From NCBI RefSeq assembly GCF_006345805.1, contig NC_043013.1:21700001-21764000 (forward strand): a DNA stretch of 64,000 bases, given 5' to 3'. Position 1 is the first letter of the stretch. Each line of letters starts with the position of its first letter. The position numbers and the translations under genes are program-made. This document shows positions 1,430 through 60,950 of this stretch, one piece after another. Source of the stretch: Octopus sinensis (taxonomy: Eukaryota). The notes under the pieces are model-generated. The model did no database searches and was not told the origin of the DNA. It saw only the letters and a list, made by a program, of their open reading frames with translations.

Positions 1430-1647
1430 TTATTTTATATAATTATTATTAGCAAACGTGATCAGTTTCTTTAGTAAGCACTTAGTGTTAGTATATGAAA
1501 AGGCGGTACATGTAGAAGATATCGTACATAAACGTGAACAATCCAAGACCGAGCGGGCATCCATTTGGACCTCGGTTATGAGGTTCTGATATGGATTTTG
1601 TTTGAAGGAAAATGTTGATTAAGATGTCTGGCCATTAATTTCTTTTT
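1430..1647 (-). pseudogene. PAN/apple-domain exon C copy 1, inactivated
   Basis: Acceptor ...ttttctattgtag|AA AAA GAA at 1647 (phase 1). Translates EKEINGQTS*STFSFKQNPYQNLITEVQMDARSVLDCSRLCTISSTCTAFSYTNTKCLLKKLITFANNNYIK*. Premature TAA at 1619-1621 where the other copies have TAT. Confidence 0.8.
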
Positions 1648-3205
1648 CTACAATAGAAAAAAAAAAGCAAGAGAAGGCACAAGAAATATAAGGACATACA
1701 TTAAATTATTGCTCTTCATTGGAAGGTACAAGGGAAAGGAAAGGATATGGTCTATTGATTCGATAGATCGACTTCATTAATGTTCCGTTTGGACATCTTT
1801 AGGGTAGTGAGAGTAGGGAGTGAGTTTCTGAGTTTTTCATAATCTAGAAAGGAAGGATTGGGATTAATAATTGATGCGGGATGTGATCTGGTTGGTGTAA
1901 TAGCATGTATGACGGGAGAAGGAGAAGGGACATGTGGCTGGGTATCTCGGGGAGAGGAATTATAAATTTACTGCTAATATATTTAACTAAGAATTAGGAC
2001 TCTAAGTAGAAGAAATAATGCGATGAAGAAGAGAGCGACATTAATTTCTCTTATTTTTTCGACAAGAACTGGAGACAGAAGATCAATGAATTAAAGATGA
2101 GAAACGAGAAAAAGAAAAATGCACACAAAAAATAAGCAAAAATAGGTCTTACCGTCAACGAAATAATAAGAGTCGAAAACTCTTATACCACATCCTACAG
2201 AGTTAATCTTGTCCAGTGTATTTGACTGTTTGAAATCGTTCCAAAGTTCTGAAATGGAATAAAAATAGTTTCTTATTCTTCAGATGGTCTTAATATATTC
2301 GTGATTCCTTTAATATTAATCAAGAAATCCTAATCTCTTTAATGCAATCGACTTCCCTATTTATATAAGACCATTTTATATAAGAAATCATTACTTCTTT
2401 AATATATGTTGAGTTTTATTTACTATCAGTTATTTCTAGTAATAACACAAGGCCTCAGATATGAAGGGACATACGTTTATAAAGATCCTAGCTACTTTCG
2501 AAATGTACTTCAAACATGTCTTTATATGTATAACGGTATAATTGTAACGGGAAAGGCGTAACAGGCACGATGTAGCAAGTTGTCTGTAACACATAGAGAT
2601 GTGACAAGTTGGCGAAAGACTGTGCATTGCTTAGATAACATTTCTGGATGCACTGCAATGAACTGCTGAAAGGTATTTCACACTTACTGTAGAATTTACT
2701 TACGCGGTTCTGCAACTGCGACGAGTGGGAAGTAAACACAAAATTTAGTTAGTTTTGATGGATAATCTATTACCATGGTAGTTGTTAATAGTGAACCCTA
2801 ACTTGAGTAGGGTAAATGGGGCAAAGCTCCCGAAAAGGTGCCATAGTTAACTCTTTGGAAGTTGCAGAGGAAAGAGAATATTTTTCTTTTGGTATCTCGA
2901 ATTTATTGCAGTACTAAAGTCAAGTCAGACCATTGACAATAGACCGGAATGGGTCAACAAGATTACACTCTGTCTCATCTAAAATGGTGGCGAATTAAAT
3001 AGGTAAAACGAATGAATTCTAAACACAAATGGCGAGAACAATATAAACAAGCGTGAAGGCCGAGGTTTCGATTCTTGGTAAGGAGTCCGGTGTACATGTC
3101 TTACAAATATAATTAGTCCGCATTGGATTTGGAAAAAATGATTTTTTCTGGAACAGCTCAGAGAAGCGTTTAGAATAGATCGGAATGAATTTTAATATGT
3201 TGTCT

Positions 3206-3270
3206 GCAATGCTAAAGCGGCGGACTGGCCGAATCGTTAGCATGCCGGACGAAATGCTTTTCGTATTGTC
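3206..3270 (+). mobile_element. 5' fragment of tRNA-derived SINE (ggcgg..tggccgaatcgttagc head)
   Basis: Same head as 14030 and 48350; also present in duplicate at ~57127. Confidence 0.6.
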
Positions 3271-4629
3271 TATTTACCTTTGTGAAGAGGTTCGTCAATC
3301 CTTTTAAAATATCAAAATCAATAATAATGATTACAATAATAACAACAACAAGAACAATAATAATAATAATAATGATAATAATAATAATAATAATGATGAT
3401 GATGATGATGATGATGATGATAATGGTAATAATAATAATAAAGAGCGCTAGCCTTGACAGCGGCTGCACTGACGAGTCAGTAGCCGAAGACACAGAAACA
3501 CTAAGACAACCCGGCAGAACAACTGAAATATAACTTTTGGTAATTGGAACATCTACAATCTCTTGTGAGCATTTCAAAATCTCCCCCACCACCCCATAAG
3601 GCTAGAAACTTACACATCTTCAATTTTCTCTGGGTGAACACACAAACGGTCATCTTTAAAAAACTTTTAAAACGTTAATATTTACAACTTCTATGAAAAC
3701 CTATTCTCTCCTTTCTCCTTGAATATTCAAAAATAAAAACACCCTTTTTATTGCAAGAACGCTACAAACGGTCATCTTGAGAAAATTTAAAACTTTAATA
3801 TCTACAATTTTCTATGAAAATTTTACCCTTCTGTTCACCCTGACTACTCAAATATGTAAACGTACCTTTTATAGCCACAAATTAAACGCACGAAAAAAAT
3901 TAAGGAGAGAAGCACCTGCCAATACATACAAACTGCACAATTACGAAAACTATAAACCACAGAAAAACCTACAGAAAGCAAAGGAAAATTCAAAAATATC
4001 CACCCCACCTTCAAGCTGCTCCTCTTTCTCCTACTATCGCCTCCATCCTTCACATATTTTTGCTAATCTCAAGTACAAGATAAAAGTGGAAACTAAACAA
4101 CATTTAATAATTCCACACAGTAGTAGGAGCAAAGATGGCATCACGAGACGGTTACAATGCCGGTGATTGTAGGAGCCCTTGGGACGATAAAAAAATGAAC
4201 AGAAGATAATTTGAGAATGATCCCTGGACTACCACCCATGCAGGAAGTTCTTAAACTATATATAAAATGTATTTCTGTAATTATTAAACTGTACTTTTTA
4301 TAGCGGTTAAAAGAACATGAAAATATATTTAATATACATGCCAGCTAATGTTCGTTAGCGTTCCAGAAAGTATATTTCTCTATGGCGTTTATATAGCTGT
4401 AGTTAGGACTGCGTATAATGATAACACTTAAGTTATAAGTGACGGTCTTATCATTATATATCCCTACTTTAAAAGCTAAATAATTTTATCTATTTCCAAA
4501 TAGGAAACATAATAAGTAGCGTTGCATTAACTGTAAACAAACTAACTAGAAAATATATGCTATAAAATATAAAATAAGAGAAACTTGGTAGCCATACCGC
4601 TATACAAGCACCCAGATGTAGCTGAATAA

Positions 4630-59160: not shown

Positions 59161-59699
59161 AATTGTTACATCAGTAAATATAAAATTGCTTTCCAAATGA
59201 CTTCCTTTGCAGTCAACATCATCACTGTTGAGGGATTGAGGCAGTCCCTTAAAGGTGATGAATTCCCTTTCTCTAGGAAAGTCTGGTACCAAATCGTTTC
59301 ACTCCACAACTCCTCAATAAAGAATCCCGGTTGCTGCTGGGTTTTGATGATAATTTAAAGAGACAGGGTCGTAAAGGTAATAGCGTCTCCCCAGGCATAT
59401 AATCTGACTTGGTTCTTGGACTTCAAGACAGGTTCTATTAAAAGAATTGGCCTGTCCGCAGTTTGAAGCATACTTTTGTGTCTGTACACACTTCGCTGTT
59501 TCAAATTGTCTTTCAACGCAAGAAGCGAATGGAGAAAATTCCTGCCATCTGAATGCAATAAACATACAGTCGGTAAGAAAGCGACAAGAGTTTTTGAGAT
59601 GAGTGAGTTCCCGGTGATTGCAAATGTGTGGTTGAGTTCGTGGGACTGTCGATGCATACACTCAATCGTGTGCATCTATTCACCTAAGAATCACAGATG

Positions 59700-60360
59700 G
59701 AATAGTTTGGGAATGTTTTACACATCTTCACTGTGCCACTAAAACATTGGAATTTGACAATCCGCGTCAGTTTTTCTTTAGCTCTTTCTCTGTGAAACCG
59801 AGTATTTATAGGTTTTTCTGCAAATGTGCAAAATTGTTGGTACATAATCTAATGCACTTCTGATGAAAGGTGCAAACGAGACTTTATGGTCAGGGTACAA
59901 GAACTGTAAGTTTGCCATAAATGTTCTATTTTCCTAAGACTTTTGATTGCACATTCACATCCTCTGGGCAGCTGACCCTTACAACAATGCATGAATTTTT
60001 CCCCTGTACCACAGAACAATATCAGGTCTGCTATATTTGTACCGAATTGATGTTTGTTTTTGCGGGGAGTTCCACCAGTATTCCTTGCTTTCAAAAGGTC
60101 TGATTACTTGCTGGTTCTAACATGGCTTCGATGTATACGTCCGAGCAGTCCTTCCTATGGGTAGCATCGTAAATAGTCTTTGCAACTATATCATGCCTCA
60201 GGGGCAGGTAGAATCTCGTAGGCATTTTGTCGCAACTACTGATGATGTGGGTGACATCTTCCACACTGGTATAGCAGAGCCAACATTTTCCATCGCAGCA
60301 CGGAGGTTTGGTGCTATCTTTGTCCCTTTTATTCATCGATTATTTAGTAGTTATCTGTAC
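59700..60360 (-). mobile_element. RLE-type LINE fragment (paralog of 24780-25480)
   Basis: CCDGKCWLCYTSVEDVTHIISSC...RHDIVAKTIY. Confidence 0.75.
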
Positions 60361-60719
60361 GTATGAGTGTGTGCGTGCATGTATGTATGCATGTATGCGT
60401 GCATCTATATATGTATGCGAGTATGTATGCATTTATGTATGTATGTATGTATGTATGTATGTATGTATGTATGTATGTATGTATGTATGTATGTATCTAT
60501 CTATCTATCTATCTATCTATCTATCTATCTAATTTGGTATTGAGTCCGTACCTTTATATGACATTGGACTTAGCCAATGATAGAGCCAAGTAAATCAAAG
60601 TCCTGGCCTCAATATAACAGTCTAACACATTTTGGAAGGTGGTGATTTAGTCTTGTCTAACTGCCTGTGTATAATTCCAACAAAATAAATAAATAAAAAC
60701 AAGAAAATGACGCCCTTAC

Positions 60720-60950
60720 CTCTGTTTATTTCGGTGTAAATGTAATTTTTGTAAAAATACAATTCAGCAGTTCTATGACCTATAGTTGACAAGTAGCATC
60801 TTTTGTAATTATAGCTATAGTCAAACGATTGGCAATTTGGCATTGCTTCGCAATGAAGCAGACATTGCGTGTAACTGTAGTCATTAAATCTACCCAAATC
60901 ATTCTCTGAAGGTATACCAGCAAGGTCAATAAAATCAAAAGGACATCTTC
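60720..60950 (-). CDS. PAN/apple-domain exon A, copy 3 (phase 1-1)
   Basis: Same splice sites; 231 nt open. (G)RCPFDFIDLAGIPSENDLGRFNDYSYTQCLLHCEAMPNCQSFDYSYNYKRCYLSTIGHRTAELYFYKNYIYTEINR(G). Confidence 0.85.

Follow-up and report, generated by a model that had tools for sequence, protein, structure and literature searches.

The closest structurally described relatives of the octopus proteins considered here belong to the PAN/Apple superfamily, among which we compared the N-terminal PAN domains of HGF and plasminogen, the apple domains of factor XI and prekallikrein, the apicomplexan microneme lectins SML-2 (from Sarcocystis) and TgMIC4, and leech antiplatelet protein. The octopus proteins share with these their matches to the Pfam PAN_1 profile, a C-x3-C-x5-C-x9/11-C core, the beta-beta-alpha-beta-beta-beta fold (in a model of the module A2) and the common logic of extracellular binding modules. 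However, sequence identity is only 15-24%, and the octopus proteins carry three PAN modules alone behind a signal peptide, with no protease, kringle or other partner domains. Their putative Apple outer disulfide would furthermore link residues encoded by different exons, A and B, and the last loop would be 44 residues long.

Nearer relatives are octopod RefSeq and UniProt entries named 'uncharacterized' or 'Apple domain-containing', which match the complete gene described below in their six-exon, all-phase-1 structure and SP-PAN-PAN-B-PAN architecture, at 53-71% amino acid identity. They include O. sinensis LOC118766702, LOC118766713, LOC118766704, LOC118761179 and others, O. bimaculoides LOC106868906, O. 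vulgaris CAI9735614 and Argonauta hians GAB1605676; no published function for these proteins, nor any literature on the family, was found. An exhaustive HMM search returned 8 representatives at E<=1e-30, and the top matches with a source name (six of the eight representatives and seven weaker ones) all come from Octopus or Argonauta hians. Judged from these sequences, close relatives appear to occur only in Octopus and Argonauta, so that the family appears octopod-restricted.

The window, by which we mean the whole stretch of 64,000 nucleotides analysed, is very probably part of a tandem array of this octopod-restricted family of six-exon genes with phase-1 introns, and contains one complete gene and two partial ones. 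A canonical gene of the family would encode its signal peptide in exons 1 and 2, followed by D (a four-cysteine PAN module), A (a hypervariable five-cysteine PAN/Apple module), B (32 residues with one cysteine) and C (a four-cysteine PAN module with the stop codon). The features of the window are as follows.

53877..61191, no strand assigned: segmental duplicate block 3 (self-BLAST)
60720..60950, minus strand: exon A3 of the upstream neighbour gene; PAN_1 34.0 bits
56061..56156, minus strand: exon B3; homologue match (tblastn) and splice sites
55175..55365, minus strand: exon C3b, an extra copy of the terminal exon; PAN_1 24.8 bits
54414..54604, minus strand: exon C3a; PAN_1 24.9 bits
42780..42810, minus strand: coding part of gene 2 exon 1 (MLRRNYLQII plus one base); ends in phase 1, donor GTAAGT
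38812..38847, minus strand: gene 2 exon 2, 36 nt, FLFYISLTFGNG, the remaining signal peptide; phase 1-1, AG/GT sites
37998..38255, minus strand: exon D, first PAN module (4 Cys), 258 nt; phase 1-1, PAN_1 26.2 bits, E 7e-6
22632..26293, no strand assigned: segmental duplicate block 2 (self-BLAST)
25941..26171, minus strand: exon A2, second, hypervariable PAN/Apple module (5 Cys), 231 nt; phase 1-1, PAN_1 43.2 bits, E 3.6e-11
23795..23890, minus strand: exon B2, 96 nt, 32 aa, one Cys; phase 1-1, tblastn to homologues and splice sites
23096..23292, minus strand: exon C2, third PAN module (4 Cys) and stop codon; PAN_1 24.2 bits
1..6842, no strand assigned: segmental duplicate block 1 (self-BLAST), 90-91% identical to block 3 and 82-93% to block 2
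6360..6596, minus strand: exon A1 of the D-less partial copy; PAN_1 35.4 bits, ORF and splice sites intact
2153..2248, minus strand: exon B1, protein identical to B2 (sequence comparison)
1457..1647, minus strand: exon C1, disabled by an in-frame TAA and a 3' deletion

The complete gene, gene 2, runs ex1-ex2-D-A2-B2-C2 from 42810 to 23096 on the minus strand and encodes 282 amino acids in an intact ORF; exon 1, exon 2 and D each occur only once in the window. Positions 37882-58181 are collinear with O. sinensis CM016875.1:22013828-22058583 (locus L001, at ~22.0 Mb, the LOC118766702 region) at 92-96% nucleotide identity, an alignment that identifies LOC118766702 as the positional orthologue of gene 2. 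Its individual exons agree: positions 42960-42710 are 92.5% identical to a 250-bp query spanning exon 1 of LOC118766702, exon 2 carries the FYISLTFGNG motif at 92% nucleotide identity to exon 2 of L001, and D is 87% identical to its counterpart in amino acids, within collinear DNA at 93.9%. AATAAA signals lie 86 and 109 nt downstream of C2. We join the exons of the window genes on the strength of splice-site logic and of RefSeq/Gnomon models for orthologous genes. The 282-aa and 250-aa products of the window itself are absent from the protein collection searched. The sole strongly hydrophobic stretch of the 282-aa product covers residues 6-20, and a canonical gene is predicted to yield a secreted protein of ~30 kDa.

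The assignment of these modules to the PAN fold, which the earlier note had proposed, is borne out by profile comparisons and, for A2, by structure comparisons. Every exon scanned with Pfam PF00024 PAN_1 (A1-A3, D, C2, C3a and C3b) scores above the gathering cut-off of 21.4 bits, the C exons at 24.2-24.9 bits. A four-cysteine core, C-x3-C-x5-C-x~10-C, is present in all modules of the 282-aa product (D 53/57/63/75; A 138/142/148/160; C 254/258/264/274), and the core cysteines of D, A and C are invariant across the family. The nearest sequences in the PDB are SML-2, TgMIC4, plasminogen and the kallikrein apple domain. For A2, the module to which the fold match applies, an AF2 model (pLDDT 83.7, pTM 0.73) has the secondary structure E-E-H-E-E-E, and Foldseek relates it with probability 1.00 to the HGF N-domain, plasminogen, SML-2, FXI and Eimeria PAN; the TM score is 0.70-0.82 against the HGF N-domain, the plasminogen PAN domain and SML-2, with an rmsd of 1.5-3.4 A to PAN/Apple structures. 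Since the full-length model is poor (pLDDT 41), the folds of D and C, and the disulfide between A and B, are predicted from sequence.

Exon B (ELWNDFKQSNTLDKINSVGCG...), 96 nt long and of phase 1-1, lies between A and C in all three blocks and is included in most homologous gene models. The product has 14 cysteines with B and 13 without it. A bears an extra N-terminal cysteine (GRCP) and B a single one, giving six in A+B with the spacing C-x26-C-x3-C-x5-C-x11-C-x44-C, which is Apple-like except for the long last loop. B thus probably supplies the sixth cysteine that completes an Apple-type A+B domain, with a putative C1-C6 pairing.

In the four related loci (L001-L004, from three Octopus species) the unit is without exception ex1-ex2-D-A-B-C with one of each exon per gene, O. 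vulgaris having two consecutive full D-A-B-C units, and homologue protein models follow the same order. Since these loci hold one exon of each kind per gene, we read the window as one complete gene, the 3' part of a neighbour and a D-less copy. The window differs from all four reference loci in its extra D-less A-B-C block and its duplicated C exon. Moreover, A2 is only ~41% identical to the A module of LOC118766702, and the B-C segment of the window gene resembles that of the neighbour rather than that of the orthologue.

Block 3 (A3-B3-C3b-C3a) represents the 3' portion of the neighbouring gene upstream, the 5' exons of which fall beyond the window. A3, B3 and C3 sit upstream of gene 2's promoter exon, a position that speaks against the cassette splicing discussed below, and a search of 60950-64000 for remnants of the neighbour's D, exon 1 and exon 2 found none. 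Among the four C copies in the window, C3 is locally duplicated, its copies lying 760 bp apart within a 0.76-kb tandem duplication (54340-54876 matches 55097-55640 at 88.8% by self-BLAST). By position, C3a is orthologous to the C exon at 2642-2828 of L001 (95.4%), whereas C3b lacks a counterpart at the corresponding O. sinensis site and has its nearest match in the C exon of O. sinensis LOC118766702 (92.9%).

Block 1 (A1-B1-C1ψ) is most likely a decaying partial duplicate. It lacks exon 1, exon 2 and D, no similarity to any of these being detected in the 16.5 kb upstream of A1 up to C2, even at E up to 50. In C1, a TAT->TAA change at 1621-1619 ('GQTS*STF') introduces a stop, and a 3' deletion of ~70 bp, which we infer from the self-alignment break at 1463/1464 versus 23039/23109, removes the normal one. 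The intact ORF and splice sites of A1 are mildly unexpected for a dead copy.

The eight PAN-type exons (A1, A2, A3, D, C1, C2, C3a and C3b) all lie on the minus strand with canonical AG acceptors, the internal ones having GT donors. All introns are in phase 1, and as D (258 nt) and A (231 or 237 nt) are multiples of three, D-A2-C2 can be spliced in frame, as the earlier note had stated. Such an all-phase-1 structure is a textbook signature of shuffled extracellular modules. The reading of A followed by C in each duplicated block likewise stands, since the three segmental duplicates (~82-93% nucleotide identity) all carry this order, and position 1 does lie within a duplicate (1-445 matches 48617-49053 at 90.6%). 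The segment DCSRLCxISSTCTAFSYTNTKCLLKKL is the same in all four C copies. The A copies are 53-66% identical, i.e., 34-47% different, in agreement with the 33-46% first reported. On the other hand, to say that the C copies differ at only a few residues understates their divergence, as they are 78-89% identical and C1 is broken by a stop and a deletion. The original map also lacked the 96-nt B exons, the two signal-peptide exons, the fourth C copy, the C1 lesions and the absence of 5' exons from block 1.

The A module is unusually variable, its mean pairwise identity family-wide being 0.47, against 0.75 for D, 0.71 for B and 0.78 for C. Between A1 and A3 the exons mismatch at 18.6% of positions and the flanking introns at 6.8% and 5.2% (Fisher p = 4e-7; non-synonymous versus intron differences, p = 4e-8). 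The variable columns of A are concentrated in strand β2 and two loops (47-50 and 56-63); the helix and the cysteine core are conserved. Within the window dN/dS is 1.6-1.8 for A and 0.25-0.7 for C, the contrast of dN with dS for A not being significant (p = 0.2). Across eight A exons from the loci of four species, dS is 0.76 (0.17-0.30 for D, B and C) and the pooled dN/dS is 0.59. Given this raised dS and a family-wide dN/dS below 1, positive selection or accelerated evolution of A is not demonstrated, and the data fit equally well with A lineages that are old and all other parts being homogenised. Hypervariable exons flanked by conserved introns are familiar from snake-venom PLA2 and three-finger toxins, conotoxins and MHC peptide-binding exons. 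The octopus A exon would share with these families an exon divergence above that of its flanking introns and clustered non-synonymous changes, but would differ from them in its family-wide dN/dS below 1 and its elevated dS. Exchange between units is seen in the C exons: C2 has its best match in the C of the neighbouring O. sinensis gene (96.2%), ahead of its own positional orthologue (90.1%), and for C3b the situation is reversed. On sequence comparison, C copies have thus been exchanged between neighbouring units.

Could the window instead be one complex locus, in which ex1-ex2-D joins either A2-B2-C2 or A1-B1-C1 by combinatorial splicing and the upstream gene picks C3b or C3a? Any join of these phase 1-1 exons would be in frame, A1 and B1 retain intact ORFs and splice sites although block 1 is devoid of 5' exons, and a single gene contains two intact terminal exons, C3b and C3a, separated by 760 bp. 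However, phase-1 symmetry is a general rule for shuffled extracellular modules (Patthy 2021, PMC8001218) and therefore does not testify to combinatorial splicing. Downstream of every A come a B and a C of its own, with a stop and polyA-like signals, which leaves no constant region to be shared; a D-A1-B1-C1 product would end at the C1 TAA and lose the third PAN domain; and the four related loci keep strictly one D, A, B and C per unit. Annotated isoforms of the homologues differ only by an alternative first exon (LOC118766713 X1/X2) or by skipping of B (LOC118766702), and never in their choice of A or C. We consider such splicing very unlikely, and the cassette choice of A with an alternative terminal C put forward in the earlier note finds no support. 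Protocadherin alpha/gamma, UGT1A and Dscam1 resemble the octopus locus in having tandem, sequence-diverse exons for extracellular binding modules beside conserved exons, a likeness of pattern only. The related octopus loci have one A per gene, and in the window no set of variable exons sharing one constant exon set was found. A two-cassette version, in which ex1-ex2-D feeds A2-B2-C2 or A1-B1-truncated C1, and the neighbour alternates C3b and C3a, seems to us highly improbable. If true, partial tandem duplication would have made a small splicing-based repertoire atop a gene-based one. Irrespective of splicing, A might conceivably be a diversifying domain used for recognition in an immune, chemosensory or reproductive system peculiar to octopods.

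It is also very doubtful, to much the same degree, that the window holds three independent functional genes, with block 1 expressed from diverged or distant 5' exons or from another promoter and leader. A1 and B1 are intact, and the flank of block 1 (1-928) resembles the intergenic DNA downstream of block 3, which implies that the array continues beyond the window. Nevertheless, the failure to detect upstream exons for A1 and the lesions of C1 both speak against a third gene, and a protein starting at A1 would have no signal peptide. The tandem genes for secreted multi-PAN proteins suggested earlier nevertheless come close to our reading, except that only one of the three is complete. Mis-joined haplotigs, or collapsed or expanded repeats, might in turn have produced block 1 or the C3b insertion, the region being rich in microsatellites and TEs and differing from O. 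sinensis (CM016875.1) downstream of D and at C3b; that assembly also has a frameshift in one C exon. Yet the blocks differ by 7-18% in nucleotides, the extent of A divergence is far beyond that of alleles, and tandem units of the same kind occur in three other assemblies, which makes such an artefact highly unlikely.

We therefore return to a tandem array of separate genes, and tentatively propose how it may have arisen. The array would grow and be reshuffled by unequal crossing-over and gene conversion between units, an exchange that would preserve the similarity of D, B, C and the introns, with the A exon remaining much more divergent. The divergence of A could reflect selection for new or different binding surfaces, old A lineages resistant to homogenisation, or both. 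By analogy with apicomplexan microneme lectins, the N-domains of HGF and plasminogen and the factor XI apple domains, the proteins may be extracellular binders of carbohydrate or protein. Specificity would then reside in the A domain, and diversity would come from the multiplicity of genes, not from splicing. The 'variable A, constant C' picture holds as an evolutionary pattern, its appearance being due to gene duplication and not to a shared constant region.

The locus reveals no new genetic mechanism and is of an ordinary kind, with a modestly interesting hypervariable module. It nonetheless documents an uncharacterised, apparently octopod-limited family of small secreted three-PAN proteins in tandem arrays, in which A varies much more than either the remainder of the gene or its own flanking introns, and the conserved parts are exchanged between neighbours. 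As this pattern is typical of recognition and binding repertoires (lectins, immune effectors, binders of gametes or chemical cues), it is reasonable to choose the family for studying cephalopod-specific extracellular recognition.

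The genes of the window are arrayed in tandem and encode small proteins made of three PAN domains behind a predicted signal peptide. Their middle module is hypervariable, the units have exchanged sequence, and one partial copy is decaying. The base composition of the window is 35% G+C, and all of its PAN exons lie on the minus strand, where a motif search of the window recovered every motif of the earlier note. Mapped to the base, the three A exons (231 or 237 nt), the single D exon (258 nt) and the four C exons each start in phase 1 after an acceptor AG, and the A and D exons also end in phase 1 at a donor GT, so that D-A2-C2 splices in frame, as had been claimed. 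The exon picture drawn there was largely right but incomplete, lacking both signal-peptide exons, ex1 and ex2, the 96-nt exon B between A and C, a fourth C and the damage to C1. Homologous gene models, placed both on the loci they come from and on the window, yield a unit of six exons, ex1-ex2-D-A-B-C, with five introns, all phase 1. The added exons are as follows.

42810-42780, minus strand: ex1, protein motif MLxxN..QII, single copy in the window
38847-38812, minus strand: ex2, motif FLFYISLTFGNG, single copy in the window
One per block, three in the window: exon B, 96 nt, ELWNDF...GCG...FVD

Self-alignment delimits three duplicated blocks (1-6842, 22632-26293 and 53877-61191) of approximately 82-93% identity, and the fourth C arises from a 0.76-kb tandem duplication within block 3, which yields C3b and C3a. 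An apparent tblastn alignment of a signal peptide directly upstream of D was rejected as intron read-through, which is present in O. sinensis too; mapping on homologous loci places the true signal-peptide exons apart from it. An Rfam scan of the window returned no matches.

The PAN fold, on which the earlier note had made its reading depend, is present. Every exon type scores above the curated Pfam cut-off for PAN_1, and A2, modelled with AlphaFold at pLDDT 83.7, aligns structurally with the HGF N-domain, a plasminogen PAN module, the Sarcocystis lectin SML-2 and factor XI apple domains at TM scores of 0.70-0.82. Only the single A domain folded well; a full-length AF2 model of the homologue P0002, built from an 8-sequence alignment, was unusable (pLDDT 41). 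The product has 14 cysteines with exon B and 13 when it is skipped, and the spacing across A+B is the six-Cys Apple pattern C-x26-C-x3-C-x5-C-x11-C-x44-C. B is therefore likely to complete the A domain at its C-terminal end, and a D-A2-C2 join without it is probably a minor form at best.

One gene is complete. Exons ex1-ex2-D-A2-B2-C2 give an uninterrupted 282-aa ORF with 14 cysteines, one N-glycosylation sequon and a sole hydrophobic segment at the N terminus (residues 6-20), followed by AATAAA signals 86 and 109 nt past the stop, and the gene is the positional orthologue of O. sinensis LOC118766702. Neither the 282-aa and 250-aa predicted products nor the D-containing ORF has an exact match in sequence collections. 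A3-B3-C3b-C3a is the 3′ part of an upstream neighbour gene, whose 5′ exons must lie beyond window position 64000. In block 1, C1 carries a TAT to TAA change at 1621-1619 and has lost about 70 bp, stop included. Neither the DNA from A1 to C2 nor that from A3 to the end of the window gave credible remnants of ex1, ex2 or D in searches with blastn (word size 7) and tblastn (E up to 50). A1-B1-C1ψ is a supernumerary copy that lacks D and is decaying. Because the self-alignment pairs the block 1 flank (1-928) with intergenic DNA lying downstream of block 3, the array probably extends to the left of the window.

The earlier note had weighed three tandem genes against one locus in which variable A exons are spliced combinatorially to a constant C. 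Four related loci, two in O. sinensis and one each in O. bimaculoides and O. vulgaris, follow the order D-A-B-C, D-A-B-C without exception, which bears out the tandem genes in kind. Each A is followed by its own B and C with a stop, and there is therefore no common constant region; recorded isoforms differ only in the choice of first exon (LOC118766713 X1/X2) or in the omission of B (LOC118766702), so that combinatorial splicing finds no support. Nor is the uniform phase-1 symmetry a specific pointer to it, because such symmetry is general for shuffled extracellular modules and for introns near signal-peptide cleavage sites (Patthy 2021, PMC8001218). The one combinatorial join that might still occur is that of D to A1, since block 1 lacks a separate 5′ end; the product of that join would terminate at the TAA in C1. 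As to fused models, P0001, a 298-aa O. vulgaris ‘Hypothetical predicted protein’ (CAI-type) from L004 (OX597830.1:44766234-44827331), joins exons of two consecutive tandem genes in the order D-B-C(part)-D(part)-A-C(part); this fusion almost certainly reflects faulty annotation and not a real transcript across units.

The tandem units have also exchanged sequence. Window 37882-58181 is collinear, in reverse orientation, with O. sinensis CM016875.1:22.01-22.06 Mb, with a nucleotide identity of 92-96% that extends to the non-coding DNA; the O. vulgaris locus L004 was rejected as the same locus, being a paralogous place. We compared C exons with 300 bp upstream (window 23096-23592, 54414-54904 and 55175-55665 against 2340-2820 and 33705-34186 of the CM016875.1 locus, L001). 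C2 matches the neighbour gene's C in O. sinensis at 96.2% but its own positional orthologue at only 90.1%, and C3b is reversed, being closest to the positional orthologue of C2 (92.9%). At the level of sequence, these swapped partners indicate recent non-allelic exchange or unequal crossing-over between units. The orthologue of C3a at L001 2642-2828 is split between two reading frames (tblastn HSPs 2642-2680 and 2679-2792), either as a frameshifted pseudogene or through an indel in the O. sinensis assembly; this would account for the missing RefSeq protein of that neighbour gene and for the out-of-frame C reading in which LOC118761180 (P0011) ends.

Within the unit, A is the most variable exon. 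Among 10-14 family members, mean pairwise identity is 0.47 for A, against 0.75 for D, 0.71 for B and 0.78 for C, and only 10 of 79 A columns are invariant, mostly the Cys scaffold. Plotted on the model, variation clusters in strand β2 and loops 47-50 and 56-63; the helix and disulfide core are conserved. Between A1 and A3, mismatch reaches 18.6% in the exon versus 6.8% and 5.2% in the 240-270 bp of intron on either side (Fisher p = 4e-7), with changes clustered in runs of 2-5 adjacent bases between long identical stretches. Within the window, non-synonymous divergence exceeds intron divergence (p = 4e-8) and dN/dS is 1.6-1.8 for A pairs versus 0.25-0.7 for C. A firm claim of positive selection is nevertheless weakened by eight A exons from four species' loci, which have a pooled dN/dS of 0.59 and a dS that is itself high (0.76 versus 0.17-0.30 for D, B and C). 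The pattern therefore admits two readings, either diversifying selection on A or the preservation of old A lineages while gene conversion homogenises the rest of the unit.

The genes are embedded in DNA rich in (ATGT)n, (AAT)n and (TA)n microsatellites and retroelement fragments, of which the following were mapped.

122-591, 5814-6171, 17750-17891, 25498-25677, 48738-49053, 60379-60528: (ATGT/TATG)n microsatellites
20441-21253, 43909-45081, minus strand: ORFs carrying Cys-rich motifs and a GIY-YIG match too weak for the Pfam cut-off (E 6.5e-4)
27874-28756 and 61106-62332, plus strand; 11921-12508, minus strand: retrotransposon fragments
31217-31538 versus 32163-31841: inverted repeat of about 320 bp (98.5%), arms about 300 bp apart, D-A2 intron
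51041-52130, minus strand: ORF fragments with PPYSPGLAPCNNFLLPRKKK
39996-40560, plus strand: CT-rich low-complexity stretch, ex1-ex2 intron, Pro/Ser/Leu-rich ORFs in three frames

In all three blocks the A-B intron contains an (ATGT/TATG)n tract, 200-500 bp past the A exon, and others are intergenic; they translate as pseudo-ORFs in all frames. The GIY-YIG and Cys-rich ORFs suggest retroelements of the Penelope-like type; a 0.58-kb inverted duplication of 98% identity (20131-20713 versus 21851-21270) flanks one copy, and the 391-aa ORF (43909-45081) is located shortly upstream of ex1. The 11.8-kb D-A2 intron contains an RVT_1 match (E 3e-11), and a 409-aa ORF upstream of A3 contains a zf-RVT match. 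The O. sinensis loci carry related copies of transposable elements, up to 98% identical (window 61686-62852 versus the related locus L003). The inverted repeat may represent DNA transposon termini or a foldback element, and PPYSPGLAPCNNFLLPRKKK resembles the C-terminal motif of mariner/Tc1 transposases; Pfam gave no match at E<=0.001 for 51041-51376. The CT-rich stretch is probably simple sequence, not a gene.

In a protein search, the PAN-coding pieces have relatives only among Octopus proteins. With the homologue alignment as query, a word-indexed profile search returned 14 proteins, all Octopus, and an exhaustive HMM search across 1.84 billion representatives found 8 matches at E<=1e-30 and 38 at E<=1e-10; the top matches with a named source (six of the eight, plus seven weaker) are all from Octopus or Argonauta hians. 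These relatives are named only ‘uncharacterized’ or ‘Apple domain-containing’, and a literature search on octopus, cephalopod and mollusc PAN/Apple proteins found nothing relevant. Among the matches are also far longer Octopus proteins with numerous matched PAN stretches; P0023 (O. sinensis LOC118764742, 2643 aa) and P0024 (O. bimaculoides LOC106869390, 1730 aa) contain 7-13 stretches matching the D-A profile, which points to a possible octopod expansion of PAN/Apple modules wider than the three-domain family.

By analogy with the PAN modules of SML-2, MIC4, HGF, plasminogen and FXI, the three-PAN proteins are predicted to bind carbohydrate or protein outside the cell. The A(+B) Apple domain would determine their specificity, and the repertoire would come from the number of genes, not from splicing. 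The locus belongs to a known kind of system, in which the hypervariable A module is the moderately interesting part.
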